Assembly: GCA_965644265.1 (NCBI GenBank)
Contig: OZ286463.1
Location: 10,726,001 to 10,790,000, forward strand
Direction of reading: 5' to 3'
DNA from: Glycera tridactyla
Lineage: Eukaryota
DNA length: 64,000 bases
In this document: positions 20,743-62,711 of the stretch, piece by piece
Position numbering within the stretch: position 1 is the first letter of the stretch
Layout: each line of letters begins with the position of its first letter
Program-made: the position numbers and the translations under genes
The notes under the pieces: generated by a model
The model's input: the letters and a program-made list of their open reading frames with translations, nothing else
Told to the model about the DNA's origin: nothing
The model's database searches: none

Positions 20743-21180
20743 CTCTTTTATGTATCATATGTCTTGTATATCACTCCTTTCTCCAGGTCTTCCTCACTGA
20801 ATAAGAAGTTGAGCTCTGCTATTGGCAAAACCTCTGAATTTGATGGATATGCTCTCATGAGTCGGTCAGTCAGACTACTGTTTGTTGTAGTATTCCATGT
20901 CACATTTGAGGAGTTTTGCCATGTGTAGGTGTGTTCACCCTTGTGACCGTTGACCTGCTAGCAAGCTGACTTGCCTATCCTCACTCTGTCCAGGTATATT
21001 ACTTTCCCTCCTTTACTTTTCTATCTTGACAGCTAAGGGACCAATTCACTGAAATATGCAATTGGCATAGGTGTGGTGGTTTGCAATGTTGGACCATGAC
21101 CTAGAAACCAAGAGTACCCATTCCAGTTCTGGGAACACCATCACTGGGGTGAAATTGCCCCCTCTCTCCGTCCTTTGGTG

Positions 21181-21229
21181 CTCCTCCTCCTCCTCCTCCT
21201 CCTCCTCCTCCTCCTCCTCCTCCTCCTCC
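21181..21229. repeat. (CCT)16 microsatellite
   Basis: Read directly. Confidence 0.95.
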
Positions 21230-24200
21230 ATCATGGCCATCATAACATCATCTCCGTTGTCATCTCATCTCGCCTGCATCACCCCCACAAGATGCTTCAC
21301 TTCATCATCCCACACTCATCACATGTAACTCTGATCATATCTCTGGTGCCTATCCTCCCATGTGCTTCATGCAGTTCCATCCCCATCATTTTGTGTTCAG
21401 GGTTTGTGTAAGTGTTGCCTGCAGGGGATAGAACATCTCACTTTCGTTGACCAGAAATCTCTAGGTTGATGCTGGGTGGATACTTTTTCTCTTCCTTGTG
21501 TCAGAGTCAATACTGCTTTGTCTCATTGACTGGATTGGAATGTCAAAATTCCATCAGATCCAAGCTCTCAGGGGTCATTTCTGATTTTGTCTGAAGGTGT
21601 TGAATGACGTTGAACAAAGAAGGGGACAGGCACTGACAGTTGCCAGTTTTGGCCTCCTATTTATTTTTCATCAGATTGTCGATGATGGGTGATCTTTTTT
21701 GTGAGTCAGGGCTAATCTGAAAGAGAGAAAGAGGCTGAGAGGGGAGGGGGGTAAGAGGTTAGCCGGCGATGTCTAGCATATGGTTTGAGGCAACTCTGGC
21801 CAACAGAAAGAACGCGGTTTCCTCTCTCTCATCATTTTGAGCTTCTTCACCCTTGCCTGCAATCAAAGCTGCTCAATGCTTCCGCTTGCTCCAGGCCAAT
21901 TGTACTCGATTGCTCGACTCCCCCATGAATAAGGAAAGGGTTCCCTAGCGGAATCGGATTGGTCTATCTGTTGAGAGCCTGGGGCCATCCCCTCAGATAT
22001 CTGCAGAGTGATCCCCAATGATATCTTTGGAGCATGGTGGGAGGGAACTCTGGAAGCACAGATCTTTGCCATGTGGCGATTCTGAATTGGAAAGTGATGC
22101 CACCTTGCAATGAAATTGTGCACATTTAGGATAATTTTTTGAGTGAATTTTGAGAACCAAAATTTTCCGGGTGTGGGCCAAAAGTTAAAAATTGGGTGGT
22201 TTGTCAGTATTATTGATCTACCACAGTCAAGTGACATAATGGTCCATATGTGGAAATTTGAAAAAAACCTAGGTGGATGTTGGCGTGCTGGCAATCCAGA
22301 TTCAAATCCACAACAAGAAATCAATGATTTCTAAGAATGTAATTTGAACATTCCAACGGTCTATTTTGAAATATATCTCATTTTGAGCTCCATCAGGCAC
22401 TTGGGAAGCCATCGACATCGAAGCCATTGCCATCGTTTGCCTTTGACTGACGACTTCAGTTGCTGCCTGCTATTGGGTGGGCCTGGTAAATCGGTTTGAC
22501 ATATTATCTGTTGACATATGACATGTTTTATGTATTATTTGCTTTCAAATTCCAGCTGAATAATCCACGTCTGCGTTTGATGCCACTTGATGTCTGGTCG
22601 GGTTGGCTGATGTATAATGTGCATACTTGTATGCAGTATATTAATCATGGGGGGGGGAGATATGTGTGTGTGTATACACATACTTGTCAGAAGTGGCCCA
22701 GCAGCCATCTTAGATGCATGTTTTCTTAGCTTTGTTTACAGTCGACACCTTCCTGACATGCCCACCCCCCAGCGCTGAAGTTTCTAGGCAATACAGCCTC
22801 AATCATTCACATCATAGCTGCCTATGTTGGTTTGAGTGACCTCATGCCGCCCAAGGAGAACATGCATGTGCCAACAGAAGGTCATTCTAGGGTGCCTTGC
22901 AATGATTCATGCTCGGGGTTGGGGGTTGTGCGTACTACCCCCCCCCCCCCCCCCCACACACGCGCGCGCACACACATCTCGTAGATGCTCATTCCTCCTC
23001 CAGCTGCTCATCTGATGCCCGTCCACCCAGCCCTCCTACTCTCCTCACCCCATTCTTACCTCACTGTTACCATGGCAACATAATATCTCTCCTGGAGAAA
23101 TATCGACTGGTATCATTTATTTACAGCCTGGGTGGTGGCTGTGATGTTATCTAGGTGAGGGTTGATAGCTTTATCTGACTGGAGCAGTAGTGATGGGCAG
23201 GTACCGAGTGGGTCCCGCTAGAAATTGAGATTATTATCAGTAATTCTGAAAGAAAATGTGCTGAAACTTTATTCCAATATCATGTTGTGGATATGTTGAG
23301 GAAAAAATATCTCAGTACAGTATGACTGGACTATAAAAAGAGGCATGTGAACTGGGAATGCACATGGTTTACGATATAAGATATATGTCCTCTTTTGGGC
23401 CCTCAAATAGCCCAACATATTATGCAATGGCTATGGCAATTTCACAACAACGCAAGTTTTTCGGGTGAATATCCGAAATTGAATATTTCGGCTCCAGCTT
23501 TCCACATTTACAAATGTGATGAATATTTGGAACGTTCCTGGATGGGGATTTTCATCCCTGCTTTTAAAGGTGAGATTATCCCAGTATTGAAGTGGATGTG
23601 ATGACTGAGGGTTGAATTGATGAATGGGGTTTCAATAATGAGGGGGTTAAGATGTGATGAATGATAATCCAGATTGATTGGAAGTCCCGGCAGTTTAATT
23701 GTTGTACAAAGTCTAATTCATCAGGAAGGCAGCAATAGGTAACATGACTTACAACATTTCTCGCAGCTGTCAAAAGACGCTTGATTGAGAGCAATCAGAT
23801 CTAATGGTGAAGTTACATTCCAATCAGCGTCAGCGGCTGCGAATTTGTGAGAGCGCAAAGGTGCAGTAATGCGGTGTCGAGCCGATCGTACATGGCGCTC
23901 CACAAACGACAAGTCTAGATGTCACTTCGTGAGTTGTCACTGTAAATAATGCTTGAAAGAAATGTCAATAGTAATTGTATGTGGGTCAGATCACGGCCGC
24001 CGTCGCTTTTCTCCACGTTCGTTTGCCTGCATTAGAGGCGCGCAGTGTACGTAGATCGACCAACAAACATTGTCTGTGTACCGTGACGCTGGTGAGAAAA
24101 CCTGATGGGATTAGACGCTCAAAAACGATGACGACAACGAGAGCATAAGATGCGAGCGAGCGAGTGAGCGGAGAAGAAGCTCCTCGCCAGAAGAAAATGA

Positions 24201-41208: not shown

Positions 41209-42849
41209 GCGCGGAGTAATTCTGATCACATTCTCTCACCAACCATCACCTTGTTGGCTTGGTGACTTTGAAGTGGCAGTGGTGATAGATTATTTTCAGG
41301 AAGCCCCGAGACACCCGTGAAATATCTAGAGAAAAGTAAATCAACGAGCCTTCGGTATTTCATGGCTTGGGTGTCAAATATGCTGTGGATGCTCCTGCTG
41401 AATGATCTCCTCTATTGGCCCATGGGCTACAACCCACATAGCATCTTGCCACAAAATCAATACCATGTTCTCATTCAAATAGTGTTGTAATAGTAGACAT
41501 TTTTCCAAGTCACCGAAATCAAAAGAAAGCGGCTCGCCCTTGGATGTATTGTGAGCTGGAGATACTATTTCTGCTTCCTGTCACTGATGAATGATGGTGG
41601 GGGAGGCTTTTGACGGGCGTCCCCACTGGGTTGCGATCCTAGGTGAGAGGTTTGGGGATCCCCTGTTGCCATGCAGAAAGTAATTAAAAGCCAGCCGAAG
41701 GTGACGGCAATGTAGTAGAGAACAAGTTGACCTTGAGACACCCAAGTGCATGTCTGATGTATGAGGCTGTGACATGTAAGCATATAGGGTGTATCACCAG
41801 CCAAATAGGAGAAGAGTGCCTCCATGCAATGAACATGTACTTTCTGTACTCATTTCTTCAAAGTTTTACCATCCCACTTTTGTGCCAACAGTCACTGTAT
41901 CAAATGCTCTTTTGTACAAAAAAAAAAAATTGTTTTCTTTGTCTGATTATCTGAGAAATGTGGCACACTCACAAAAAAGTCAAAATTGCTTTCATCATCA
42001 TAATTATTTGAGAAATGTGGCACATAAGATTACAGATGACATGAGCACAAGGATACAGGTAGCTATTGTCCTTGTTGCTTGCATCTGAGTCGCGCTCCTC
42101 CTGTGAGACATGTCATCCACAGTCTGCATGCACTGGGGGCTTCAAGTTCTCTTTTGACAGTTAGTTGTTTGAAGTAACAAAAGTGAAAAGAAATGTCTGA
42201 CGCACGCCAGGTAGAGAGCATATAGAGTGCTTGTGTAGATTCGGCCTGTCATACAAAAATATGCTCTGCTTCAAGTTTGAAGTGGGATGGAATGCAAACC
42301 ACGGGCGACTAGAGAGACAGCGAGTTGACAAATACTTAGCCTAAGTCAATAGAGGATGGAAAAAGTGGTCTTCCCTCAAATAACAGTTGAATGGAAGGAA
42401 AACATAGTCTGTGTGTCATCAGTGCATCTGTTTTTGTTCCCGGGTCACCAACCCTGCCTGCCTCCATGGCTGCTTGGTCTGCCACCACGTATGGATGTAT
42501 GGTGTGGATGACCATAACATCAACCCTCGACATTCTCTCAACTACAGATGATGTAAATATTGTTGATGATGGGGTTGAAACCTCTAGCCTGACTGAGTAC
42601 TTATATCAGACAGGGTGGTAGCCACTTCTCTATGGTACGAGGTCGGACAAGAACGTTCTTTAGATACCGATGGATTCTACCAATTGATAGGATCAAAAAT
42701 GGGTATTTTAGACCCTGATGTCTCATTGGTGTATTTTGGAAAGTATTCAATTTTCAAATTCATGTGTTTGATCATAGCATGATAGCATATCTATACTTTA
42801 TAGAATTATCCATGATGCTGTGGTTCATTTCTTTTGATATCAATTTAAG

Positions 42850-43031
42850 TACAGTAAAACCTGCTCGAGAGTAAACCTGTGCTAGGCAAAATCCTGTCTT
42901 AAGCACATACCCCACGGTCTGCCCTTATGTTTTTTTTTTCACTATAATTGTCCTGCGCTAAGCAAAATCCTGTCTTAAGTGGAAGAAAAATTTGGTCCCA
43001 TGACTTTTCACTTGAGACAGGTTTCACTGTA
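42850..43031 (-). mobile_element. MITE family 1 copy c, inverted relative to copies a and b
   Basis: Reverse complement of 1401-1581 at roughly 90% identity by eye; TA flanks. Confidence 0.88.
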
Positions 43032-43205
43032 TCAGGCATGGGAACTCAGCTGATACTGGGAAGCATGCTGGAGAATCGAGGGGAACCAGTTTGTACAATG
43101 GAGTGAGAGTAGGTTGCAGTGCAGGCTGTACCATATTGAGGACGTCACGTTTTGCTTTGTGGGGAATGTTTGTGCTGATTTTGCATGATGATATTCTGGT
43201 TCCAG

Positions 43206-43302
43206 CCGGAGGGAGAGGATGAGCTGAAGAAAATGCAGTTGATGGAGCTCGCCATTATCAACGGGACATACCGTGACGCCAAAACTGCCGCAAGTCTAGC
43301 CC
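43206..43302 (+). CDS. qki: QUA2 exon copy A: [32 protein letters not shown] (97 nt, phase 0-1)
   Basis: Acceptor ctggttccag|CCG and donor GCCC|gtaagt. Carries the QUA2 signature EGED.LKK.QLMELAI.NGTYRD. Confidence 0.95.
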
Positions 43303-43350
43303 GTAAGTGTGCTGCTCAGTCACGCCAGTGGCCACGTCGTCACACCCAAA

Positions 43351-43404
43351 ACTCATACCGACTCATACGCCACTAACCCATGCTCGTGTAACACCAGTTT
43401 TAAC
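43351..43404 (+). promoter_or_regulatory. Candidate Quaking response element cluster downstream of QUA2 exon A
   Basis: ACTCAT (43351, 43361), ACTAAC (43372), and TAAC half-sites (43389, 43401). This is the bipartite ACUAAY-N(1-20)-UAAY QKI consensus. It also reads as a branch point for the AG at 43424/43430. Confidence 0.55.
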
Positions 43405-43946
43405 CTCTTCTCGTACATTTCTAGCCATAGGTGACGATGTAATCTATGCTGCCGTGCTGACTGCTGCCACGTCGTGACGCCCTGATGCACCTGCTATGGT
43501 GGCGTCGTCTTGTGAGGTAGCACCTTGACTCGAACCACAAACGTAGAGATATGCCATGTCATGCCAATAGAACAAGATTGTGCTTCCTTTTCTGTGATAA
43601 CTATTCAGATTGCTTTGTTCCATACATTCCATCATTTCTATATTCATTTGTTCATTCAGAAGCCACATCATGACCTTTGAGGTGTGCAAAGTATTCTGAT
43701 ATTTTGGTTTTGGCTTTGACCTGTTGAGGTTCTTTCATGCGTTAAAGAACCTTTGATACGTTGAGATTTCAACCATGTTCCACAGACCGGACAGAGATGA
43801 GATTTTCAGATAGAGCATTCGATATTCACTTTTGGATTTCATGCTTTGGTATGTTGAAAGTTCTCACTTTGTCCAATCTTGTTGCAAGAAAGGAAGGAAG
43901 GCATTGTTCATTGGTTGGACATGGTTTGATATGTTTGGGTTCCAAC

Positions 43947-43987
43947 ACTAACCTTGTTTCTGTATAACAGTGTAACATGGACTCAAT
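43947..43987 (+). promoter_or_regulatory. Candidate QRE / branch point upstream of QUA2 exon B
   Basis: ACTAAC (43947), TAAC (43965, 43973) and ACTCAA (43981), 30-70 nt upstream of the exon B acceptor. Confidence 0.55.
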
Positions 43988-44016
43988 GTGTCTTCTTTAT
44001 GATGCGATGTTTACAG

Positions 44017-44134
44017 CCCGAGGGAGAGGATGACCTCAAGAAACGGCAACTCATGGAACTAGCAATAATAAACGGCACATACCGTGACACCAAGGCGGCG
44101 TCGCAACCCAGCGTGACCGCCACCACAGCAACTC
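44017..44134 (+). CDS. qki: QUA2 exon copy B: [39 protein letters not shown] (118 nt, phase 0-1)
   Basis: Acceptor gatgtttacag|CCC and donor ACTC|gtaagt. Second complete QUA2 signature, with many synonymous differences from copy A. Confidence 0.95.
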
Positions 44135-44144
44135 GTAAGTGACG

Positions 44145-44154
44145 GCATGGCATG
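44145..44154 (+). promoter_or_regulatory. Tandem GCATG (RBFOX-type) motifs just downstream of exon B; a TGCATG also lies at 43182-43187, just upstream of exon A
   Basis: gtaagtgacgGCATGGCATGcaac; ttTGCATGatgatattctggttccag. Confidence 0.45.
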
Positions 44155-44241
44155 CAACTACGACCCTTGGAACCGATCATGGTGCCTGCTTGCTGTTACC
44201 CTCCACTCTTCCCTCTTCCCATCTCTGTGTCCTCTCTGCAG

Positions 44242-44271
44242 GGCTTGCAACCCGACTCTTGACTCACACAG
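44242..44271 (+). CDS. Candidate 30-nt microexon (R)LATRLLTHT, phase 1-1; a second in-frame donor at 44280 gives 39 nt
   Basis: About 40-nt pyrimidine-rich tract ending ctctctgcag|. Donors CAG|gtgccc (44272) and TAA|gtgaat (44281) both preserve frame, with no stop. Confidence 0.5.
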
Positions 44272-44356
44272 GTGCCCTAAGTGAATCCTCAAATTTTGAC
44301 AATTGAATGACATTCTGAGGACCTTCATTAGTTAGCAATGATTTAACTCTTCAAAT

Positions 44357-44556
44357 GACATTATCAAAGTACTTTACATATCACATCATCAAAGTACTTC
44401 TACAGATCACATTAACAGAGCACTTCCAAAGATCACATAGTGAAAGAACTTCTACGGATCACATTGTCAAAGTACTTCTACAAGTCACATTATCAGAGTA
44501 CCTCTACAATCACATTATCAGAGTACTTTAAGAATCACATTGTCGAAGTACTTCTT
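44357..44556. repeat. Degenerate tandem repeat, about 8 copies of a ~26-bp unit (TCACATTATCAAAGTACTTCTACAGA)
   Basis: Repeated cacatt.tca.agtact motif. Confidence 0.8.
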
Positions 44557-46773
44557 TGGGTCATACCCATGGGACAAGTGATGACTTTTGATGCTGCGCT
44601 TTGTTGAAATTGACGTGTTTTACCGTGTTCAGATTGCAAGTATTTATGTCATCGCCTATCCCACTATGGCAGTCAGTAGTGTTCCAGCAACCATGAATTC
44701 AAAATTTGAATTTTCGTTGTGTAGAATGAAGATTGGATCGAAATATTAAGCTTCATGTTGAATATTGTCACATGCCCTGTGAGAGTTAAGTAAGTCTGTG
44801 TCATATGTGGTTGGTATTGACCATCTTCTTCCACCCGTTCTTTACTGTCTTTAGTTGAGTTCTTAGTAGATGACTTGGTTCAAATTCGATTCTGTTTTGC
44901 TTCTATCACAATTTTTCTCACTTGTTGTTTCTGTTGACTTCCGTAATTATTGCCGTGGATTACACTGCTTGCTGTGGTTGCCGTTTGCATTTTTTGTGTG
45001 TCATTGCACCAAATTCACCGTGTGTAGTACTTTTTGTGATCAAGCTCTGCGTATTGATCGAGTATGCTTGTAGTTTTGAGTTTTTGCATTTTTGTAGTTC
45101 AGAGGACTTGTGTGTCACCAACTAAAAATTCCATTCGCAGGATCAGATATAGGATGCATGGAAAATTAGCATTGCAATAGAATGTGGGAATTTCTGTTTT
45201 ACTTAATTTGGTTGTGAATTGTCCCATTTCGTCTTCTGAAGTTCATATCACCTATATGAATAATGCAAGGTATGAATATTGAAAAAATCAAACTCATCAG
45301 GTTCAGAGATATAGCGAGGAATTCTAATGCAGTTTGATAAGTAAACCGTAGATGGTACTTAGCAGATGCTATCTATCAGCTGGCCGTTTATACCAATTTA
45401 CTACCAGCTCATATTCAGTTACCACAAATTCACCTGTGGACATTCAAGTCCAGCTGTAGTTTCTAAGCTTCTTGTCGGAAAGCTTCTGTCCAGGCTATCG
45501 TGATAGAAATATTCAAGTCACATCTCATTGAAAGATTTGAAGTCGAAACTAGTTCAGCCATTTCAGTGTACATACACTCAAGCTAGTATTTGATAGATCG
45601 TCCTACATGGACGTATCCGCGATGGTATGCGAATATAGCGAAAAGGGTTGATATATGATATTCGTTGTCGGAAAAAATAAACGCAAGGTTGTCATGAGTG
45701 AAGTGGTTGATGTACTCATAATGTCGGCGAGTAGAATATTAATTAAGGTGTCATGTTGATAGGACGAGATGTATGTCACCTGCTGTTTGCTTGTGATTTC
45801 ATTTCTTCTTCTTCTTCGGCTGCCGCGTCAGTTCTTTGTCTCCTCATCCGGGTCCCCTCCTCGCTCAGGACATGCCACTCATGATTCACTAGTTATACCA
45901 CATACAACAAAATTCAACATTTGTAATTGCCTTGTGACCTCTCGTTCATTACATTTCCAGTTTGACTATTTGGGCTAAGATTGATAATTGTATTGTTGCC
46001 AATCATTTTAGGACACAAATTCTTAATCTGGCTGAATTTTTCCATGGTACACCATAATCTAGGGAGCTTTTCAAAGTTCAAGACTAACCTGTATCAAGAT
46101 GAGTTTCTTGTCCCCTCTGAATCAAGAAGTCCGTCTCAAATTTTCACCAACAATTGGAACTAGCGAGTTTTGACCATACTCTGTATAGAGGAAGCTGTGG
46201 CGGGCTATGAGCTACAAACATTAATAGATTTTTTTGCAAGATGTATCATGTTTGAGTTGATATCTTGTAAATTAGGTGAACTAGACAATTTTCATGCGAG
46301 TGAGAAGCGATCATCCAGTCTGATGCATGACTGCAATAGAAATAAATATAGGAGTGAAAAAAGGAGAACGCCTAGAAGAGAAAGTGTGATATTTGTCGTA
46401 GGTGAACCTGCATAACTTGTACTTCATTTAGGACCTGGATATCAAATACAGATTTCAGCCCGTTAGTGTGCTACCCGAGACTGTGCAAACTCAGAAAGAG
46501 AACTGAAGTCAGTCAACAGCATCACTCAGTGGTTGCCAGCAGCACTAGCTGTTTCCATCTGAATACGTTGTGAAGTGAACCATCGCTTTGTGACACAAGT
46601 ATAGATTAATTAGTTTCATTGTGTGGAGTATTTGCACAAAAATTTCCCAGGTTCATGCAAATTCATGATTTTTGTTCCCATTCCAACCGAAGTTGAACAT
46701 GACATTGACAAGACTTTTATTCATGGTAGTATTTTAGGCATTTATCTTTGGTTGGTAATGTCCACCCTGCTAG

Positions 46774-46803
46774 CTGGTGCGATAATTAGTAAAAACTTGT
46801 CAG
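46774..46803 (+). CDS. Candidate 30-nt microexon (x)GAIISKNLS, phase 1-1
   Basis: Strong donor CAG|gtatgt, moderate acceptor gtccaccctgctag|, frame-preserving and stop-free. Confidence 0.35.
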
Positions 46804-48542
46804 GTATGTGGTATAAATTGTGAACATGTGTGATTTAGCAGGGTCTTTTTTTCTCCAGCATTCACCATATTTGGGGTCAACATGTATTGGCTTTTCTTTC
46901 ACTATCGCTGCCTTGAAATGAACTCTTGTCACTCTTTTCCCCCATTGTATAGCGGCTCATTCTTCATGCCTACTTTCACCCCCATAGTTGTCACCGCTTC
47001 TCCCCAAACCCTAGCCTTTCTTCACAGTAGTCAATGGACTCCAGAATGGTATGCTAGAAACGATCCATCCTTTCCCACATGTTGGTCTCTAGTCGTTCAG
47101 GAATGTAGATCTCTTGTGTAGTATGGGATGTGATTAGGCAAGAACTTGGCATGGAGTATTCCTGGCAAGCTATTATCACATTTGTAGAATCACCTGCTCT
47201 CGGCTTCACCAGCTTGAGATTAGTCATTTGGTCTAATGCTAGTCATGTAAGTACACTGTACAGTAGTTGGTTGCATCACAACTGGTTGCAGTTGAGCGCC
47301 ACATGCTGGCTGATCTGCTGTAGTCCTGTGAGCATCATATAGAGGGCGGCAGCTGCCTTGCGTTGCAAGGTCTGCTGGTTTATTTGCCGTGCCACCAGAT
47401 GGTAGTTCACATTGGTTGCATTGTTCACCACCAGATGGTAGTTTTCTTTGGTTGCATTGATCACCACAAGGTGGCAGTGTTCAGGAACTGCTTTTCTCTT
47501 ACAGCGTCCCCACTCTTTCTGTGCCTGTTCTTGCATGTTCCACCTTTGTGGGATGTTCAGATCACCCCGCCATCTCTTGGAATGCTTTTATGCCCAAATA
47601 AGAATCTATAGGAGGGGGAAACAGAATGCTTTTGATGCCAGAGTTAAGTCTCTCTAGGTATTTAACAACCCCAGACCTGCTGATATTGAGGTTTGTAGCA
47701 TGATCCCTGGGCCTAATTTCACCAGGAACCCATGTAAATTCCTGTTAATTCTACCTCTGCTGGAATATTAATTGTATTTATCACATTCACTGGCCCCAAG
47801 CCAGTTTTGTAGAACTTGCATAAGCCCCCCCCCCCCCCCAAAAAAAAAAAAGAATAATGAAGAAATTCACTTTTCTTCCCTGAATGGGCGAGGTCCACTT
47901 TTGACAATGGAGGGGAGAGGGAAAAATATTGTTGATGAAAATTTTCATTCATCGAAATTCGGCTCCCAACTCAATAGGAAAGGGGTTGTTAATGAGCCCT
48001 ATGACGCTCAGGGTCTATGGCAATACAGGGTTGCATCCAGAGGGGGGCATGGGGGCATTTCGTCGACTATGGGCCTCTCTTCCCCACAATCAGCGGCCAC
48101 AATGCCCCATAAATCAACAAGGAGGTTGCACATTCTGATGTTACGTGAACCCATATTGAGAAATGTGGTGGAGAAATGCTCTCTTTTCTCAAATTCAAGA
48201 GGGAAATGATCCCAATTTTGGAAATCCTGGATGCAAACCTGGGAATATGCTGATGGAAGGCTACAACCTCAGTGATGCCAATTTTCTGGAAATTTTCAGA
48301 ATTCCGATGATTGGATGAAAAACCTGATTTGGAAATTGCAGCAAAATGGCTGGAAAAGGATACACCTGAAGATATGTTCTACTAGTATAAGAAAACTCAA
48401 CAATATTTCCCAAAATTCAGCTTTAGGTCATTGGCATCACTGTTCCTTGTACATACATTTTGGTTGATTGCAGTATTATATATGTGGAATAATTGATAGT
48501 TTGTGGTTTGCATTATATTCACAGCATCATCATCACTCCCCG

Positions 48543-48729
48543 CAGAGATGCCAACCTTTGTGATTTTTGAGTAATGATTACTCATTTTGGACCAGAATTT
48601 TAGTGCCTACGTACATCATTACTCCGAGAAATTCCACCTCTTTTTTTTCAATTTTGGCAATTACTGCCATCATTACTTCATAAAAATTACATCATTACTA
48701 TTTTTGCTCATTAAAGGTTGGCAACCCTG
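48543..48729. mobile_element. MITE of the same family as 32013-32209, copy 2
   Basis: CAGAGATGCCAACC ... GGTTGGCAACCCTG; shared GTAATGATTACTC and GCTCATTAAAGGTTGGCAA. Confidence 0.7.
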
Positions 48730-49732
48730 TTTTCAGGTTCTGTGCTTGAAATTGATTCATTATGATCTACTAACCCACTCACCGACCCTAAATTTTTAAT
48801 CCACTTTGCACTGAAAATGTATGAACTATCATGTACTGTATTTTCGTGCGTTTGATTGCATTTGATTGCCACACCTGCTATTTATAGTAACCCTGTTTTA
48901 GCAATTCAGATATATAATGATAATTGTAATGACTAGGTAGTTATGAAAATATCATGCATTTTAACAATCACAGCTGATTTTAGATTTCATTGTTCAGGCC
49001 GGTGTGTTCTAATACTCTGGATTTGTATTGTATGTGCACGGCTTGCTATGTCTGATATCGTAACACACACATGTACACAAGTTAGCCTTTTGGAATCATA
49101 TTCAAGCTCTTGATATTGATGAGCAGGCAAATAAATATCCAGCATAATGAACTCTTATTCTGGGCCAAAACTTTGGTACAGTATTTCTCACACAATGTCA
49201 CCATGTGAGTTCCGTTGATTGAACACAAATACACTCCTGAAAATTGACGTCATTGCTTTTAGTATGTTATTTACTGGTTTGCTCCTCTGTGTTGGGCTTC
49301 CTCACAAGTGTATCAGTACACTTCGAAAATCCCATACTAGCCCCAGATGAGTTCGGTGTTGAAATTTGCGTTATTGATTGATATGAAATTGCCTGCAAAT
49401 GGACGATAAGCTGGTGTTTCTTTGGGTATTCAAAACTTGAAAATAATGGATTTCAAAGTACCCACATTCAAAATTATTTCATTGTGAGCAAGTCTGCTTT
49501 ACCACCACCACTCCACTAAACCGTTACTTTTTTGGCGATGCAATACTTCCCTTGTATCGTAATTCTACATGCAAATCTTGTGGTGTCTGCCCCCAGCACC
49601 CAGCCCCACCGCTCACCCCCAGGTCAGATTGCTCGATTTTTGCATGTGTGATCATGGGATGTTTTTCTTCTCTCCAAGCTATGCTAGTTCTGTGAAAATA
49701 AAATGTTGGTGATTGCTTTCTGTCCGTTTCAG

Positions 49733-49750
49733 AGATGCAGTGTAATCTGC
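49733..49750 (+). CDS. qki: 18-nt microexon copy 1: (Q)MQCNL, phase 1-1
   Basis: tttctgtccgtttcag|AGATGCAGTGTAATCTGC|gtaagt. A near-identical copy with the same splice sites is at 50262. Confidence 0.75.
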
Positions 49751-50261
49751 GTAAGTGGAGTGTTGTATTTTCGGGGGACATCTCTCTGCCGCGGGTCACC
49801 CTGTGCGTAAATGCAGCCTTCGCCCTGCACCATTCCACATTCCGAATCACGTGGCATCGCCGTACAAACGGCAGTGGCTCTCCAACTTCCGGTAGACACT
49901 TGAAGGAGACTGTGGAATGGATGGGGAAGGCTGTGTTTTCCGCGAGAGCATACCCGAGGTAGACGCGTCCCCTCAACCTGCATCTTTAACGTAAATTAAT
50001 CATGATTAACAATTAACATAAAACATGTACATATGTTGTAAATTTCGACCTTGACTGCCCCGTTGACTGTTGGGACCAATTTTAGCCGATGTCCCATTCA
50101 ATTTTTTATTCGTGAAGAATTTAATCTTGTCATGCCCCAGTGATGAAAAGATGGTTATTGTGTGACATTCCATTTAATTGGGACACATGCCACTTTTAAA
50201 TGTATTGATTGATTACAAAATATCTCGCATCGATACATGGTAGTTTTTCTACATATTTCAG

Positions 50262-50279
50262 AGATGCAGTGTGGTCTGC
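50262..50279 (+). CDS. qki: 18-nt microexon copy 2: (Q)MQCGL, phase 1-1
   Basis: tttttctacatatttcag|AGATGCAGTGTGGTCTGC|gtaagt. 16/18 identical to copy 1. Confidence 0.75.
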
Positions 50280-51826
50280 GTAAGTGAAAGTTTCCTTTCT
50301 GACAGGATATTGCCTGGCCTTGTCTTTTTTGCCTTCCATGACTGATCATCAATTTTACTCCAACTAGCACTCAATCGAGATGATATAATCGTCTCATGAA
50401 TGCCCATACCTACAGTAAAATATGTCTTTAATAATAATATATATAGATGGGAAAACATGCAGTCTTGGCGAGTGAAAGGCCAGATGATATGCCCTTATCT
50501 TGTTAAGACTATTCTAAAGATAAATAGTTAAGAATCTGAGATATATGGGCACCAATTGGACTTCCAATGGTGACATAGATCTTTGATGTGGTTTTGATTT
50601 CTATTCTGATTATCAACTACAAGTAATGTAGAGTGAAGAGAAATAGTAAAGCATTGTTTATTAAATCAGCAAGATTGGTTCATATCAGCTTCAAACATCA
50701 TAGACCTCGACATTGACTGGTAATCTTGTTTTCCGATGGATGATCCTACAAAGAAAATTGTGACTTTGAACCCCCTGCTTCAGGGACTACAGTTCCCCAT
50801 AAGATTACTAAATGTAGTTAACCGGTAGCTCATAAGCTGCCCAATAACCTGGGAAACTTTGTCAGACTGAAAATCCGTAACAGTCGCCAAAAAAGAGCAA
50901 ATAAACTCGCCTAAGGGGTACCAATAATGCCTGTGTGCTAGCGCATTCATATCATCTCCCGCCGATGCCACTAGGTGGCAGTGCAGTGCTTGCATTACCC
51001 ACTAGATGGCTCCCAATGATAATATCACAAAATTGAATAAATCTCTCATATTATGCCACCCCCCTATAATCAGATTGGCAATATTTGTGTGGAGTTTGAG
51101 TGAAACACTTGCTGACTTGAAAGTCCTCTTTTTCAAGAGCAAAAACGTGTCCCATCTTACGCCATGTCGGGAAGTTAGTTAACCACACTTATCCACTAAG
51201 CTACCATAAAGAGCTGGGGGGCAAGCTTTGCTGGAATGGTGCACTTGGAATTTGGGATATCCACAACCATTTTGGTTGTTATTTCTTGCATGGAAGGGTG
51301 CATGATTTCAGTGAACTTTTGCCCCAGGTGTTAACCGATAGCAGTCTAACACAAGCATTTCAAGAAAGTTTTAAGTTGATTGTATTCCATCATCTCTATT
51401 TTTAGCAGTAATTGTATCATCAGTGAAAGTAGTCTTTTAAGATTAAAAAATGATGACTAGATCCTAAAGTTGAAAAAGTATTGTATCGGATATGCTTCCC
51501 TCCCAAATCAAAAAAGAAGTCGCTACAAATGTTTCATATGTGTTAGACATTTCTCACATTTTAAGCTTGACCAAATTTGTAATGTGTATTTGTGTGTATT
51601 TTCTGTCTGGTTCTGACCAGGTCACCGATGTGTTGATTTGTTTGGTTTTTTTATTCCTCGGCCCCCTTTGTTTTAGTTCCCATCTGCACCTCTCCACTTA
51701 CTCAAGTTGCACTTTGTTGCAAAAGAATTGAATAATTTTTTCAGTAATCATAAGAGTATTTTATTTGTCATCTTTTTCTCTCAAAAAATGAATAATATTT
51801 TATGTTGTGCTGAACTTCTGACAATG

Positions 51827-51913
51827 TAATAATAATAATGATATAATAATAGTAATAATAATAACAATAATAATAATAATAATAATAATGATAATAGCAA
51901 TAGTAATAATGAT
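51827..51913. repeat. Imperfect (AAT)n microsatellite
   Basis: Read directly. Confidence 0.9.
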
Positions 51914-52856
51914 ATGGTAAAACAATTAAATGGATGTAAATCATCAGTTACTGTGGTGTTAAGTTGAGTAGTTTTAAGGAATATTTCTTGCGTTATTGTG
52001 AATCAATCGAGTTATTGCCTAAAATCATTTGAAACCATTTCCTCCTCTGCAACTTGGTATATTGCAAGAGGTCCAGTATTCACACCCAAGAAATTAATCC
52101 CATTTCATTTTCCTGAAATCGGAAAAATATGCAAATAGATAAGGGAAGTAGATGCTGCCGCTTGAATATGATTACGCAATAAGAATCATTTACTTGAAAT
52201 TCCCACGTATTGAAACTAGCTTATTAATGCCAAAATACTGGTTACAGCCATATTGGTCATATTGATCGATAGTTAATGTCACGACCCAAGAAATATTGTG
52301 AACTGTAGGTGGCCTGTTTTTGTAGATATTTAACGCCCCACTATTTGATTTGTGTACTTGACTACTACTCTTTTCACATATATGTATAATGCTTAAATCA
52401 TATATTCACTGTTTATCATGTCATTTGCAAGATGCCAACCACTTCGTTAATTGTATGGAATAATTATTTTGAAATTATTCTGTCAAAAAGTGAGCATGTT
52501 ACATCATGAAGATTGATTAATTTACAGGTGTTTAGGATTTGTGGGAGTGATGCCTGTATGGGGAATGGGTATCCAGCTTCCATAGACCTGAAATACACTC
52601 ACACATACAATCCTTTTGGTTGATACATGCCATTAAATGTTATCAATCAATCAATCAAGGCCTACATATTCTGCAAGAGCTGTGGAATTGTACTCATAGT
52701 CCTAGATAATATTCAGTAATTTTGGTGCTCACTCATTCCACTGTTCCAAATTAATTTGGGAAAGTGTGCTGGAATGTAACTAGAAATGTATTCTGTACAA
52801 TTTGTTGCGATATAGTTGTCATCTTGTAGGCTGCATGCTGTGTGAGAAGCGTGTGA

Positions 52857-52868
52857 ACTAATCATAAC
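52857..52868 (+). promoter_or_regulatory. ACTAAT-ca-TAAC branch point/QRE before the 90-nt exon; TGCATG at 52832
   Basis: Motifs read directly, 22-33 nt upstream of the acceptor at 52889. Confidence 0.45.
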
Positions 52869-52889
52869 CTGTTGTTTCCGCTCCTACAG

Positions 52890-52979
52890 TGCAAGGGGGG
52901 TTGATGTCGCCATTCGCCACCGCCGAAACTATGCAAGCCTACTTCTCGGGGGTTAACGGAAAAACACCTACCACATCTA
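52890..52979 (+). CDS. qki: 90-nt exon (x)QGGLMSPFATAETMQAYFSGVNGKTPTTS, phase 1-1
   Basis: Branch-like ACTAAT at 52857, pyrimidine tract, ctcctacag| acceptor, TCTA|gtgagt donor. Open only in the expected phase; coding-like composition. Confidence 0.75.
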
Positions 52980-55900
52980 GTGAGTGCCACCCTATGTCGC
53001 TATGCAACACCCTCCTGTCTAGCGTCATCTGTCTGCAGATGAGATAACTACAGTGCGGCCGATCGAATACGGTCCCGCTTTGTGGTTCTGTCATTGGCAG
53101 TTTTCTCTATAGATTTGTGCGATTTTGTCCTCCCTTTAGCAATAATGGTGGAATGGTCCCAACTGCAGCACTTTGTAAAAGCACAATTATGCAGAATGAT
53201 CACGAAGATATGGAAAATTGGAATGTTTCGATACCCTGGGTTCTCTCATCAAATATGTTAACTGCACAGATTGCGCATGATTATGCTGTAAATCGCACTG
53301 AATATATTAACAATATATTCATACTATTTTAAAAAACTAATGATATTCTTGATAACCATATTTATTCAACAGAAAACGAATACATGATTGTGATATCAAT
53401 CGTCCTATCATCAGCGTCAATCAAACTGTCATCAAAATAGCTCTGTCGATATGGTTAATGTCCTTCCACGGTAATTTGATGTATGATGATTATACTGGGA
53501 ATATAGTAGTCATAAACGAACCATTGCTGGATGCCTGAGGCTCCTAGAGTCCTGTTTCTGCATCTTCGTTGATGCCAATTTTTTATTTTGAGAAAGAAAA
53601 TTTGAAGGAAAAGAAATTCAATCGAGAAGTCACGGCTATCTGGATGAAAATTCAGACCACATACTTCTGAGAATATTTTACCTTATTTCATTGAAAATGC
53701 TGAATGATTATATTTCTTATCCATAAAAGCAATGGTTACTCTGGGGAAATGATTCCTGCATGTTGATAATGTCAACTTATATTTATTAGCCCACCTTTTG
53801 AAGAATATTGAGATGAGTGTGGATAAAGTCCTTAGTATATCACTCAGGAACTGACGAACATATATGAATTATTATTTAAAAAAAAAAAGAATTCAGTTGA
53901 TTATGATCTCTGATGTAGTGCTGGCTGATAACTGAAATATCCCATGTCTTTTATAATTTCAAAAACCGTTATTAATTGCTTTTGGTGGATTTTGTCAATT
54001 TGGTATCATTTGAAATATGATTAGGTCTAATGCGGCTAACGAAACTTGATCTCTGCTAATAGCTGCACTAGTTTCTCCTCGGTTTGATCCACATTCATGA
54101 TGCATGCTCTCTGTTCTTGCCTGCTAGAATTGGTTCATTGTTGTTTGTATTTGTAGATGTTTTGAGCTTTTCAGTGTGTATGCCGCTGCCGCTGCTGCTG
54201 CCTCTTGTGTTCCTGCCGTCTCATTCTGCATTTATTCCCTCTTGTCTTGCTTGCCATATTATCGCCACTATGTAATTGACCATCCCCCCCGTCAATATCC
54301 AGTTCATCATGAAGGGTTCCTCAAACAGATGTGATACCTTGGTTGGTATTTCTCTGTTCAGTCTTCAGACATCTTTAGTTTGTGAGTAATTTCTTCATGA
54401 TCAGCTGACTATCAAAAATTGAGATGAACCTTATAGTTGATTCTCTTAAGATCTGAGGATACAAATGCTAGTTCTTTTCATTGCAAAACTTGCTCACTCC
54501 ATGTAGAACTTGGGATGAGTTATTGCATCCAAATACACCGAGGAGTGTGAAGCAGGTCCCAGTTATATTTGATACAGGAACCAACGCTGATTGCCATCAG
54601 GCACTCTGGTTTTTTGCACCTGCTACCAAATATTCCTCAGGGACTGATATGCGGGGCAAGTTTTTGTCATGATTGCATTTCCTACGTCTCATTTTTGCCT
54701 GTGTTTGTATATTCTCCCCCCTGTCGAGACTGACTGGCGACCTCATCATTAGTTTTGTCTGAGCTACGAGCCTTGATTGACTGCTCCAGTCTGTCCTTCA
54801 CTGTTCCTTCAGATGACATCCCTGGCTGGTTCATTATGCATCCATTGCCGCTGTTCTCCGGTGCTCCGACAACCTCACACTTGCTCCCGTCTTGTCCATG
54901 GGTCACTAGTCATGCCAATTCAGGAATGAGAAAATTTGGTGAAAATATTTTAATGTGAAATGTCGCCATACTACATGTAGTCATACTACATGTAGTATCC
55001 AGCTGGATGTTTCGGAAAAGATACATTGACTATATTCCCCCAAATTTCCCTTCATTTCAATCACATCACTGAGTTGGACATTAACGAAAATGGTTGTATT
55101 CCACATCCTGTTACAACACATTTTGACGATTTCCTCGAATTGATCAATTTGGAAATGAAGTCTGAAAAAATCCTGAAGACCAATTGATATTCATTATTTG
55201 AACAGCTAGATCATTCCTATTCATCGCATGTGTGGAGCTACTGGGTAGAACTATGGCAGACATTGCTTTTGTTGTCATCAGCCTTGAATGTCATCTGAAA
55301 TACCACATCACTCACCACTGCTTGTGACACGTCATTGCCTCATTGTTGTCTTCCTTCAACTTCTCCACTCACCATTCCCCCTTCCCACCGCTGCCGCCCC
55401 CTGCCAATGCCGCTGCCGTCCCCTGCCACGTCTCCCGGCAGCACCTCCCCCCTCACTCCCCCCAGCTTGTACTAATTCTGAGTGTCCACCTACAGCCCCT
55501 CTACACTACTCTCAGAACCCCTGCCTGATATCCCCTTAAGATAAGTGAGTGAAACACTTTATCAGTAGCTTGCATATTGCAGTTGTTCATCCTTTGCTGG
55601 CCAGTACATTAGTATGAAAAGTAGGTCATGCATGAAAATCTTATTGGAAATCAGTTACTGGGCATTTGTAATTCTTGTTATCGTGAAATCGATTAATGAT
55701 AAGTACTTCATATTATAGTAATTTTGAATGATGCATAGTATATATTTAATAATACTCATGAAGGATGAGTAATATACATTACAAAGTAGTTTTGAATAAT
55801 AGATATACTTCAAGATGCACATTTGTTCAGAGTTTTGCCCGGATGATGTAAATATTTTACGAGAAAAAATTAAGATTTTGAAGAACAGATATTTTTGTAG

Positions 55901-56909
55901 ATTGTAAATCATGAATAATTTCTTGAATCAGATCTTATGTAAAAGCAATACAATGCCCATCTTCCTATCATATTTAAAAGCAGGATTGTATAATTCAATA
56001 TGAAATGATGTTTTATCATGCATTTATTTCACTCCTCCCTCATGCCCACTGCCCCGACTCCTTTCTTTCACGGTTCTTTTCTCGTTCCAACCTCCCAGTT
56101 TCTCACCTTGTTTTGTCCTCTTGACTCCCGCCTAACTTATTCCCTCCCTCTGTTCTCCCCTTCCTCCTGAGGACATCAGACTTGCCACAATGGACATAAA
56201 GTCACACAGTACACGAGAGGCTCTTTTCTGGTGCTCCGCATTTATCGGGTACCAACACGGCTCAGTCAGAATTTTGGATCGCCCGCAAAGTTTTCGGCAG
56301 GCTGATTTTTTTTAAAAATCCAAATGGCTTCACAAGCAAACAGCTCGAGGTGACTCGCTCAGCCAAAATGAGCTTCCGCGATCTGAACACCAAGTAATAT
56401 CTTCCATATTGTTCCCATGTGACCATACTCCTTAATTGCAAACTTGTAGTATGGCTGCATATTCCATTCTGTTTGAGTTTAGCTTTTTCAGAAATTTGAA
56501 AGCTAATTTTCCGAGAGGCAGCCAGCGCTATGATATGTTGAAGTTCTCTTATTGAAGGAATAAATCACACACTGGGAGCAACATGGATAATCTTGTGGTA
56601 TCAGATTCACCCAGATGCTTGACATTCGCTATCAAAATTGTTCAAATTGAAGACGGAATTCCAGGGACTCAACTAGCCCTGATATATGTTTTATACAAGT
56701 TTGACAGGAGCATCATTTGCAGGCTGCAGACAGCTGGATTCTACGTCAACAGTGATGATGATGATATTCATGTCGTCTTGTATTCAACTGTTGCGTGCGA
56801 CCTTGTACTGGATTTATTTGGCAGTTTGACTGATTCTGTTGCCCTCTGGCCCTTATTTTCTCCCTAGGTGAGGTCTTCTCTCAAGGCCCATGGCGTATGT
56901 CTTTTCCAG

Positions 56910-57170
56910 AAGGGCCGCGTCTGATTGCACCGCAGCTCTCGATGGCACCACAGTTGCGTTCACCGACTTCGGCCGGACCGCCGCTGATCCTGGCGCAGCG
57001 CATGCAGCCGATGACGCCGACATCACAAGCGGGCATGCTGAACGGCGGCCCACCCCCACTGGTGTCGCCCGCCGACGCAGGACTTATTTACCCCTATGAG
57101 TACCCATTCACACCTCACCCGTACTCCTCCTTGTTGGAATACCCAACGAGCATCGATCAAAGTGGCGCTG
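56910..57170 (+). CDS. qki: Pro/Tyr-rich exon GPRLIAPQLS...AGLIYPYEYPF...SLLEYPTSIDQSGA (261 nt, phase 1-1); an alternative in-frame acceptor at 56868 adds 14 aa
   Basis: AGLIY.PYEYP and LLEYP motifs match the QKI tyrosine-rich region. Acceptor tcttttccag|AA and donor GCTG|gtacgt. Confidence 0.93.
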
Positions 57171-60100
57171 GTACGTCTTATGGAGTCCGGTAGATTTTGG
57201 CTATCGTGACTGCACATCATACATTCATATTCCCTCTGTGCTGCTTGCAGATCGCCCTTGTAATTCTCAATTCAAAATCATCTTATTATCTTTTGTCAAT
57301 TATTTTCCACTCATCTACATTTAAGTTAGTTTCAATGCATGTGAAAGGTAGCTCTGACCCACTGACTGCCCTGTGCAAGTGTAGAAGACTTGACTTATGA
57401 ATCGACTGAAGGGGTATTCCGGATCAAAGACCGTTTCAGGAGCCCTGATGAACTGTTTATATTTTAGTGCCTTGAATGAGTCAATTAGAACCCATAGTGG
57501 ATGTAGCTTCAGGTGTGAGTAGACTATGATTTCACGTTCGGAGAGGGTTGACAATCATGTGAATCTGCAAACATTCGGAGTGGATATATGTCGAGTAGTT
57601 TTGGGGTTAGGCAATTCATGAGATGGAGTCTAGCAAGATTAGTTCATACAGATGTATTTTTTTGTATTGGTGAGTGTGCATTTGAAAGGAGGAAGCCAAT
57701 GGGGAGCCCTTCCACTTAGTTGTCAGGATTGGGCAAGATGCTATGCTCTACTGAGAATTCTACACAAAATCCATAACAGAAGATAGCACCAACGTCGGTA
57801 GCTTGTACGACAAACGTGGTGGGAGGGCCCCATTGCATTTAGCTTAGAGATGCCGAGTTTCGAGTTTTTGTAGAAGTGTAATGTGTACATAAGTTGCTTT
57901 ACCATATCGTAGTCATAGTACAGCAGAATGTAGATAGATATATATTCGTTCACATCTTGAGTTTGTTCGAAGGCGTAAAAAACAGGAAAGACCTGCAAAA
58001 TTTGGACTATTTGTTCCAGCCAATTTCCAGTGAGTGATGCTCTTTTCTGGAGAGCCAACCTGATTCGAAAATGTCAATTTAGCTTGTTTCTGCCTTCTGT
58101 TGTACTTTCCATCTCAGTTTTGTCACAGTTAAGACAGATCACATTCAAACCATCGGAGTATCACTGCCAATCAAGTCCAATGGTCATGAGTTCTTCATTC
58201 TGAATTCTTGATAAATTCTCCATTCCACTGAAAATTTCATAGATCTGTTTCGTTCTCGATTTAGAAGAACAGTTTTTGGATTTTGAAGAATCTCAAATGA
58301 TGATTGTTAAATCTTAAAGAATCTCACAGAAAGTTTGATTTACATATATTCAAGGAAGTGGTTGTTCATTTTTGTTTTCCCTTTTTTTTTTAATGGATTG
58401 TCATATGTATTGAGTGACGCATCTGTCTCATTTGGAAATTGAATCTCAAGCAGCACAGAATTTTTTGCAGCTGTGTGTCAACATGTGATTTTGTGTGGAA
58501 CTTGTCACGGTCAGGTTCCATACCACTCTCCTGCTATGAACTTTGTTTCACAGCTCGCTGCAGAAACTCTCGTCACTGCAAAAATCACTCGTCTAAACAC
58601 TATCATCTCTTATGGGGATGAAAGCTTTCTGGTTCTAAATTCAGCTCATTGACAGTTTGTCGGTTCGATCCACACTTGAACAGCCTGCGTTCAGTATACA
58701 CTGTATTGGAGCGTTGTTCCACGTTTTGAAGCCATTGCAATTGTCATCCCGGGTCCTTCACCCTTTTCTTGTGCATTACTGACTATCAGAATTGATCGCC
58801 TTGTGAAATTCCCAGCGTTGAATTCTGTGGATCAGTTTTGGGCATAGGATATGATAATTTGGATAAGGGGTTAGTTGATATTGTTCGTGGCGCTCGATGA
58901 CTGCAGTGACGAGCGTCTCTCCGCGAGGTTTGAGCTGCGATGTCTGTGAAGCAATTGATTTGTCGTCGTCATGCTTGCAATTCTAGGTTTTGGGATTCCG
59001 ATGCAATATCTATATAAATGTTTTTTTTTTGCAGTATAGTCCCACATTTAAAGAGACATTAGTAGTTGTGTATTCACTTGCTGAAGATGAATGATGTTGA
59101 TGATTATTGTTAGGTATGATGAACAAGGTGAAGATGTTATATAGGCATATATTTTGTGGGTACATACATGTACAACTGCAGCAAGTAGCTTGTTCCGATG
59201 TGGTTGTTTATCGTATTTTGGTTTAGCGGGTGTTGGTTTATATTTCTTCCACGCAGGGCGGATAAGAGTGGCGCACTGCAATGGCGTGCGATAAATGTAG
59301 GTGGCGCCTCCACCACTGCGGGCACAACTGCCTCCCCAATACAACCACTTAAAGCCAGGCCAGGTCGGAATCTTGGAAACGGAGTAATCGAGTCCTGCTT
59401 GCTCCTCCGTCAGCCAATCATATTGCTAGAACGTAATGTTGCTCATCACTCATTGGCTGTTTTAATTTTTCACTGTGGCCCTTAACCAGGAATATTAATC
59501 AAGGCTCCTTTTTGTGTGTTAACGAAATTAACCAGGTTTGATCGTGGCCGGCATCATTAAAAATGTTTTAATTTTAGACCCTGGCGTGATTGACAAGCAT
59601 AATACATTTTTTTCATGGTAAAAATGTTGATTCCCTCCAATTGTGCAATGTTTAGGATGACGATGATCATTATTTATTGTAATTGGACATAGTGAAGTAG
59701 TCGGATGGAAGCGTCACCATAACACAAGTGTGCGTCTTTGTTGTCATGTCATTTTGTCTGGTATAACTGCCATGTGTGCTCCACTGCCACGCAGCGGCCG
59801 CCACTCGTAATCTTCATCATATATCCATCTCGTTAGTCTGTCATGCAGACATCCTAGACTAGCCGATATAATTGCACCCTCAATGTTCCATATATAATAC
59901 ACATAACACGCAAGAAAGTGACGAAATGCAATGAGCAGATACCAGAAATTTGCCTTCGATGAAATCGACTAGGTACATCGGGATACTCTAACTTGATATA
60001 CGGCCAAAATTACTTGTGATTTTGAGGATTGCGACAATGGGATTGTGATATCAACCAGTAGCTCATGCAGATTCGTCACACTCTTGCTGGGTACTAAGAT

Positions 60101-62640: not shown

Positions 62641-62711
62641 GTGCCGTACCGAAAGTACGCCGAGTGGGACAAGTGCGGGAACACCCTTACACACGGGTGT
62701 CTCTTGCCTAA
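62641..62711 (+). CDS. qki: Terminal coding exon (G)AVPKVRRVGQVREHPYTRVSLA*, QKI-5/How(L)-type nuclear localisation tail
   Basis: Acceptor tttttataccag|GT in phase 1. GAV..KVRR....R.HPY.R matches the QKI-5 tail (GAVATKVRRHDMRVHPYQR). TAA at 62709-62711. Confidence 0.92.

Follow-up and report, generated by a model that had tools for sequence, protein, structure and literature searches.

Two tandem QUA2 exons, with comparative evidence for either/or use, in a Quaking/How gene of Glycera tridactyla

Proteins of the Quaking/How group act as major regulators in muscle, glia and germ cells, where they control splicing, the stability of mRNA and translation. To our knowledge, all of the structural and binding work carried out so far has used proteins that have one QUA2 only. 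Vertebrate QKI, Drosophila How and C. elegans GLD-1 (structures 4JVH, 4JVY and 2MJH) share with a gene of Glycera tridactyla the KH exons, the QUA2 contact residues, the Tyr-rich region and the HPYxR-type tail, and the alternative C-termini known as QKI-5/6/7 and How(L)/(S) have their likeness in the Glycera gene as well. The difference lies in QUA2: in the QKI, How and GLD-1 lineages each retrieved protein has a single QUA2 type, with one QUA2 exon at a scorpion how locus, whereas the Glycera gene has two alternatives.

Adjacent alternative exons of the FGFR2 IIIb/IIIc type are those in which taking both exons, or leaving both out, breaks the frame and leads to an early stop and decay. The Glycera pair resembles FGFR2 IIIb/IIIc in this frame logic, but differs from it in that its exons are clear tandem duplicates of the same helix and in that decay is what the frames predict. 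Tandem-duplicated, mutually exclusive exons form a well-known class (Kondrashov and Koonin; Letunic), and the QUA2 pair shares with that class homologous neighbours of the same phase, deep conservation and, going by its relatives, a probable use as alternatives. Substitutions derived from tandem exon duplication have been reviewed for human genes (PMC8373072). Our literature search found no STAR family member among the cases of tandem-duplicated exons, and among the full texts searched, a collection that covers few of the subscription journals, no paper described QUA2 exons used as alternatives in a STAR gene. Isoforms of the two types, which we call A and B, are already public in the automatic RefSeq annotation of molluscs but, as far as we can tell, have gone unremarked.

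The explanation that we prefer for this arrangement, and to which we assign a probability of roughly 0.8, is an ancient tandem pair of QUA2 exons confined to either/or use by the reading frame, with both copies under constraint and with a switch that mainly changes the linker. Under this explanation, a tandem exon duplication before the split between the Glycera lineage and the molluscs would have made the pair, and both copies would then have been held under strong purifying selection. Each exon would supply the QUA2 helix together with the start of the following linker, and one of them would be chosen after the second KH exon; an mRNA taking both or neither would meet an early stop upstream of later junctions and would be expected to enter nonsense-mediated decay. 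The choice would mainly alter the linker beside the helix, for example its phosphorylation sites or the binding of partners, and perhaps also the stability of the helix and hence affinity.

The gene and its two QUA2 exons

Judged by its sequence, the gene is a Quaking/How (STAR/GSG family) orthologue, and the window (the whole 64-kb stretch of DNA that was analysed) carries most of it. Its features, with positions counted within the window, are as follows.

1641..1757, plus strand: KH-domain exon, phase 0 to 0; Pfam PF22675 (KH-I_KHDC4-BBP), E 7.9e-13; tblastn 95-100% against relatives
14866..15009, plus strand: second KH exon, phase 0 to 0, ending ...KLLVPA; a whole number of codons; supplies the donor for whichever QUA2 exon is chosen
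43206..43302, plus strand: QUA2 exon A, 97 nt, phase 0 to 1; acceptor ttccAG, donor GTAAGT
43303..44016, plus strand: A-B intron, 714 nt; two ACTAAC inside; nearest AG 5' of the exon B acceptor at 43969-43970
44017..44134, plus strand: QUA2 exon B, 118 nt, phase 0 to 1; acceptor tttacAG, donor GTAAGT
56910..57170, plus strand: next exon, phase 1 to 1, Q-GPRLIAPQ...YPYEYPF...SGAG; matches P0245, P0274 and P0186
62641..62711, plus strand: last coding exon, AVPKVRRVGQVREHPYTRVSLA then stop, a QKI-5-type tail; matches the C-terminus of P0193 and P0245

The exon at 1641-1757 carries the GPRG and NFVGR motifs and its match to PF22675 is above the cutoff, which identifies it as an extended KH with a GPRG loop, while the second KH exon (14866-15009) matched 520 representative proteins at E<=0.001. 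The QUA1 region should lie upstream of the window; its Pfam domain, PF16544, is present in P0274 and P0245, the transcripts closest to the gene. Among structures, 4JVH, a crystal structure of QKI STAR with RNA, is matched by the nearest full-length relatives with an E value of 3.7e-86. At the other end of the gene, exon 56910-57170, which is common to the transcripts of relatives, carries the Tyr-rich YPYEYPF segment, and an HPYxR-type C-terminal tail is present in exon 62641-62711 (REHPYTRVSLA). Alternative C-termini can be read there: read-through past the donor at 57170 (57171-57194) gives GTSYGVR*, and splicing to 62641 gives AVPKVRRVGQVREHPYTRVSLA with its HPYTR motif. Endings like GTSYGVR* occur in transcripts P0186, P0274 and P0280, and tails like AVPKVRRVGQVREHPYTRVSLA in P0193 and P0245.

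Some further features of the locus were seen along the way. Additional cassettes vary between QUA2 and the Tyr-rich exon in isoforms of molluscs and others, for example QCELSWDKGAYAGL in P0302 and P0307 (Octopus-like transcripts), and the corresponding interval of the window is 44242-57170. A short-period repeat with the unit (C)AAAGTACTT occupies 44340-44560, in the intron just 3' of exon B, and is the source of most inverted-repeat matches. There is also a G-run, gggggggggagggggggggggg, at 14760-14780, about 90 nt 5' of the second KH exon.

A pattern scan of the 64-kb window found exactly two QUA2-like reading frames. An earlier note on this DNA had placed two QUA2 exons 714 nt apart, both running from phase 0 to phase 1, and all of its coordinates and frames were confirmed by direct reading and by script. 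Both exons have a length of 1 mod 3; the KH exon before them closes in phase 0, exon 56910 opens in phase 1, and joining either A or B to exon 56910 leaves an open frame (...SLA-Q-GPRLIAPQ... with A, ...TAT-Q-GPRLIAPQ... with B). Inclusion of both gives ...SLAPRGRG*, with the TGA at 44031-44033 after 5 codons of B, and skipping of both gives ...LLVPAKGRV*, with a TGA after four codons; the same note had called a TGA at 44031-44033 for the first case and a broken frame for the second, and each was reproduced in the joined sequences. Since both exons go from phase 0 to phase 1, a productive mRNA must hold exactly one of them. Like mutually exclusive exons, the two are adjacent and homologous, have the same phases and splice sites of their own, and give nothing productive when both or neither are used. 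The mRNAs with double inclusion or double skipping should undergo nonsense-mediated decay, as their stops lie upstream of at least one later junction.

The pair in molluscs, its constraint and its age

In order to compare QUA2 across relatives, proteins with identical upstream sequence but differing QUA2 were collected into isoform groups from homology searches with full-length relatives, which covered hundreds of Quaking/How proteins. There were 14 mollusc groups in which one isoform was A-type and another B-type, all of them RefSeq automatic models. They come from scallops (Ylistrum, Argopecten and Mizuhopecten), other bivalves (Mya, Crassostrea virginica, C. angulata, Ostrea and Mytilus), gastropods (Gigantopelta, Littorina, Babylonia and Biomphalaria) and cephalopods (Octopus sinensis and O. 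bimaculoides); example pairs of isoforms are X2/X3 of Ylistrum balloti, X4/X5 of Argopecten irradians, X14/X12 of Octopus sinensis and X8/X9 of Crassostrea virginica. In molluscs, the A type follows the consensus KK[M/K/R]Q...AI[L/M]NGTYR, usually continued by D-x-K and then by a short hydrophobic tail, and the B type is near-invariant and ends in [S/T]KP before a tail rich in Ser, Thr and Pro. Two mollusc loci contain the pair in their DNA, as follows.

Crassostrea angulata (oyster), locus L002: A at 21065-21158 (94 nt), intron of 98 nt (21159-21256) with TACTAAC, B at 21257-21383 (127 nt)
Haliotis asinina (abalone), locus L003: A at 16916-17024 (109 nt), intron of 66 nt (17025-17090) with TCTAAC, B at 17091-17208 (118 nt, as long as B in the window)

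In both loci, A stands upstream of B and both exons go from phase 0 to phase 1, matching the window.

The best protein matches of the gene were to transcript assemblies first and to molluscs next, and the closest transcript, P0211 (run SRR26183954), had only 69-82% DNA identity. Exact look-ups of the read-through reading frames and three homology searches gave no protein of the gene itself, and the ESM Atlas yielded generic Quaking clusters only. Three transcript-derived proteins, P0274 and P0356 with an A-type exon and P0245 with a B-type one, share 86-88% identity among themselves and are similar to the window gene in its C-terminal region. P0274 and P0356 have an A-type tail (...ASIA-Q-SARILGPP) and P0245 a B-type tail (...TSTQ-SARILGPP), and their junctions are those predicted for the window. 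Splicing of one copy per mRNA, as claimed before, is supported by the frames and by the mollusc isoforms and loci that carry A or B, and either/or splicing in Glycera tridactyla, which we read from its relatives, can be regarded as well supported on this comparison.

Some mollusc models, from oysters, Mytilus coruscus and Biomphalaria pfeifferi, hold both QUA2 copies in tandem (P0229, P0343, P0197, P0196, P0348 and P0299). The P0229 model (Crassostrea angulata, L002) reads 40 nt into the A-B intron and uses a GTAACA donor, leaving an intron of 58 nt. Models of this kind are probably annotation artefacts, though a rare in-frame form with a double QUA2 could exist. Repeated KH exons were encountered separately in two sequences: P0001, a 111-residue open reading frame, contains two consecutive copies of the second KH exon, and in P0161, a 'LOW QUALITY' model of Amphiura filiformis, each KH exon was matched twice; in either case, exon duplication or an assembly problem could be the source.

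The cores of exons A and B are 80% identical over 75 nt. The stretch that can be aligned between the copies comprises only the 86 nt around the exon cores, and the flanking introns are unalignable beyond about 9 nt of the acceptor. Two versions of one exon, set in series by an assembly error or a haplotype duplication, would be near-identical and would have alignable flanks. The similarity of the exon cores, and nothing more, speaks for such an origin, whereas the tails and lengths of the copies differ, their introns do not align, and both types stand in tandem in the independent oyster and abalone assemblies; the chance that the pair is an artefact of this kind is, in our judgement, close to nil, as the earlier note had argued.

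Over the first 25 codons, A and B differ by 12 synonymous changes and 3 replacements (E/D, M/R and A/T), and over 26 core codons by a dN of 0.077 and a dS of about 2.2 (Nei-Gojobori), so that dN/dS between them is about 0.03. A dS of 2.2 with a dN of 0.077 indicates that synonymous sites are saturated while the protein has been held, and the previous suggestion that both copies are under purifying selection is borne out by these figures. They also bear on whether one of the exons might be a silent relic in Glycera, with the gene making one form only. The A-B intron, which measures 714 nt here and 66-98 nt in mollusc Quaking (two loci), has grown in a way that would suit a relic, but a dead duplicate would have gathered replacement changes, and both copies have instead kept an open frame, GTAAGT donors, AG acceptors and a length of 1 mod 3. 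In addition, each of the two types is used in related transcripts, and 23-24 of 26 residues are as in oyster, in A and in B alike, each compared with its own oyster counterpart. We therefore consider it very improbable that either exon is a relic, and return to the reading of two constrained, working alternatives.

In order to place the duplication in time, distances between species were compared with distances between types. Between species, dN was 0.07-0.10 for A against A and 0.05-0.07 for B against B, as compared with 0.10-0.20 for A against B. As the orthologous dN is lower than the paralogous dN, the duplication is older than the split of the Glycera lineage from the molluscs. If the Glycera lineage falls outside Mollusca, which its distance from every mollusc sequence suggests, the split would date from about the Cambrian or earlier. 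When the 31-residue peptides of the exons (31 columns) were placed in a maximum-likelihood tree, the A copy of the window fell with the A types and the B copy with the B types; this clustering is partly circular, as the A/B labels beyond the three sequenced loci were given by sequence resemblance, and most forks of the tree are unresolved, with poor support.

Other lineages had one type each among the retrieved proteins. All arthropod How proteins had KKRQ only and vertebrate QKI had KKMQ only, while tunicates had KKKQ and amphioxus KKRQ. A second QUA2-like exon was absent from the 57-kb scorpion how locus, even at very loose thresholds. The statement in the earlier note that vertebrate QKI has KKMQ and Drosophila How has KKRQ, each from a single exon, agrees with the single type found in each of these groups of proteins and with the one QUA2 exon of the scorpion locus.

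What differs between the two protein forms

We examined where the differences between A and B fall with respect to RNA contacts, using QKI numbering. The reported RNA-contact residues of QKI in this region are K190, Q193, L194, L197, A198, T203 and Y204 (PMC6847458), and all seven are identical in exons A and B. In an NMR and ITC study of GLD-1, the sole RNA-binding residue that was not conserved among GLD-1, QK1 and HOW was the equivalent of QKI 191, and position 192 was not included (PMC4081071). The helix differences between A and B, at 188 (E/D) and 192 (M/R), fall on the side that makes no contact, separated by one turn of the helix; these two positions adjoin the Asp that bridges QUA2 to KH (PMC4081071).

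One way of understanding the switch is that it retunes RNA recognition, with a QKI-like helix in A and a How-like helix in B that differ in affinity or specificity for ACUAAY-type sites. The positions at 188 and 192 belong to the first helical turn of QUA2, beside K190, Q193 and the loop of the 5' uracil pocket, and neighbouring K/R swaps altered the affinity of GLD-1 by 11-fold (PMC4081071). Moreover, the mollusc A type shares L200 with vertebrates and the mollusc B type shares I200 with arthropods. Against this, every residue reported to touch RNA is the same in A and B, 192 is outside the GLD-1 list, and position 192 of the A type varies between M, K and R with the mollusc lineage (and is L in transcripts that are possibly A-type), while the B type is invariant at this position. 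Mollusc A types, with M/K/R at 192, have L or M at 200, whereas Glycera A has M192 and I200, and A and B of the window are both I200. The drift at 192 and the I200 shared by both window copies mean that the helix differences are not the conserved feature, and we consider retuning of this kind unlikely, if still worth weighing. Two statements of the earlier note are not supported as they stand: that the switch changes the RNA-recognition surface, given that the contact residues are identical and that the list of the GLD-1 study leaves 192 aside, and that the two forms divide into 'QKI-like' and 'How-like', as position 192 drifts in the A type and the conserved distinction is the tail.

The tail is the consistent separator of the two types, being short and hydrophobic in A but more extended in B, with many Ser, Thr and Pro residues. 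In the AlphaFold models made for one A and one B isoform from relatives, which are of low confidence overall (mean pLDDT 57 and 63), the QUA2 helix ends at about 193-194 and pLDDT is below 50 after about 200. Going by the tails and these models, we think that the conserved role of the switch would sit in a disordered linker beside the RNA-binding helix, in keeping with the explanation that we prefer. The B linker is possibly a site of phosphorylation or of partner binding. If RNA binding is affected, affinity is a likelier target than specificity, and we do not think that sequence specificity is changed. The acidic-Arg pair in B could make the first turn more stable, in a helix that takes shape only when RNA is bound.

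Control of the choice and its meaning

We propose that exclusivity in the Glycera gene is enforced by the reading frame and not by the crowding of splice sites. Steric exclusion applies where the intron, or the distance from donor to branch point, is below about 50-60 nt; here the intron is 714 nt long and an AG lies 46 nt upstream of exon B. This AG leaves only the last ~45 nt of the intron for the branch point, far from the donor of exon A. With regard to RNA structure, a scan for inverted repeats over 42700-44700 gave arms of 12-21 nt with 71-93% complementarity, as expected by chance, and pairing of the docking/selector (Dscam) type is unsupported. The idea that such RNA structure, or steric hindrance between splice sites, keeps the exons apart in place of the frame draws on the mollusc A-B introns, which at 66 and 98 nt are short enough for steric effects there. 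With a long intron here, a branch point near B and inverted repeats that are short and imperfect, we find this idea quite improbable for the gene. A steric component may operate in molluscs, and the abalone intron possibly falls within the steric range. Frame enforcement is thus the account that we retain for Glycera.

Two copies of ACTAAC, a motif that serves as Quaking response element and as branch-point consensus, lie in the A-B intron, at 43372-43377 (70 nt 3' of exon A) and at 43947-43952 (65-70 nt 5' of exon B), so that 2 of the 6 plus-strand copies in the 64-kb window sit in these 714 nt, a count made post hoc. Quaking usually follows a position rule, by which a site bound 3' of an exon activates that exon and a site bound 5' of it has the opposite effect. 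By this rule, both ACTAAC sites would favour A over B, which would amount to an autoregulatory bias, and the ACUAAC elements could in this way let Quaking-type proteins bias the choice between A and B. Competition of Quaking at branch points has been described (PMC13004596). The motif in the mollusc introns (TACTAAC or TCTAAC) may simply be the branch point. Motifs of the Rbfox type were considered as well: TGCATG occurs at 43183-43188 (18-23 nt upstream of A) and two overlapping GCATG at 44146-44156, just 3' of B. Rbfox-type motifs are absent at the matching places of the oyster and abalone loci, and control of the pair by Rbfox is unsupported beyond Glycera.

A deeper history of the switch can also be imagined, in which the two exons were already present in the protostome or bilaterian ancestor, QKI kept an A-like form (M192, L200) and How a B-like form (R192, I200) by reciprocal loss, and the surviving switch is autoregulated by Quaking-type proteins through the ACUAAC of the A-B intron. 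We regard this as a long shot; if it were true, a master splicing regulator would make an autoregulated choice between two forms of itself.

The interest of the pair as we read it lies in its being very old and in its location in the RNA-binding module of a master regulator. Molluscs and the Glycera lineage, a large share of the animals, have kept two versions of a helix plus linker, most likely since before their split, which would be a natural experiment on the role of the region beside an RNA-binding helix. The pair would offer defined constructs for comparing affinity, specificity, phosphorylation and partners, and a clean case in which to study how a regulator's own isoform choice is controlled. 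It also flags the oyster, mussel and snail gene models in which both copies are, probably wrongly, held together.
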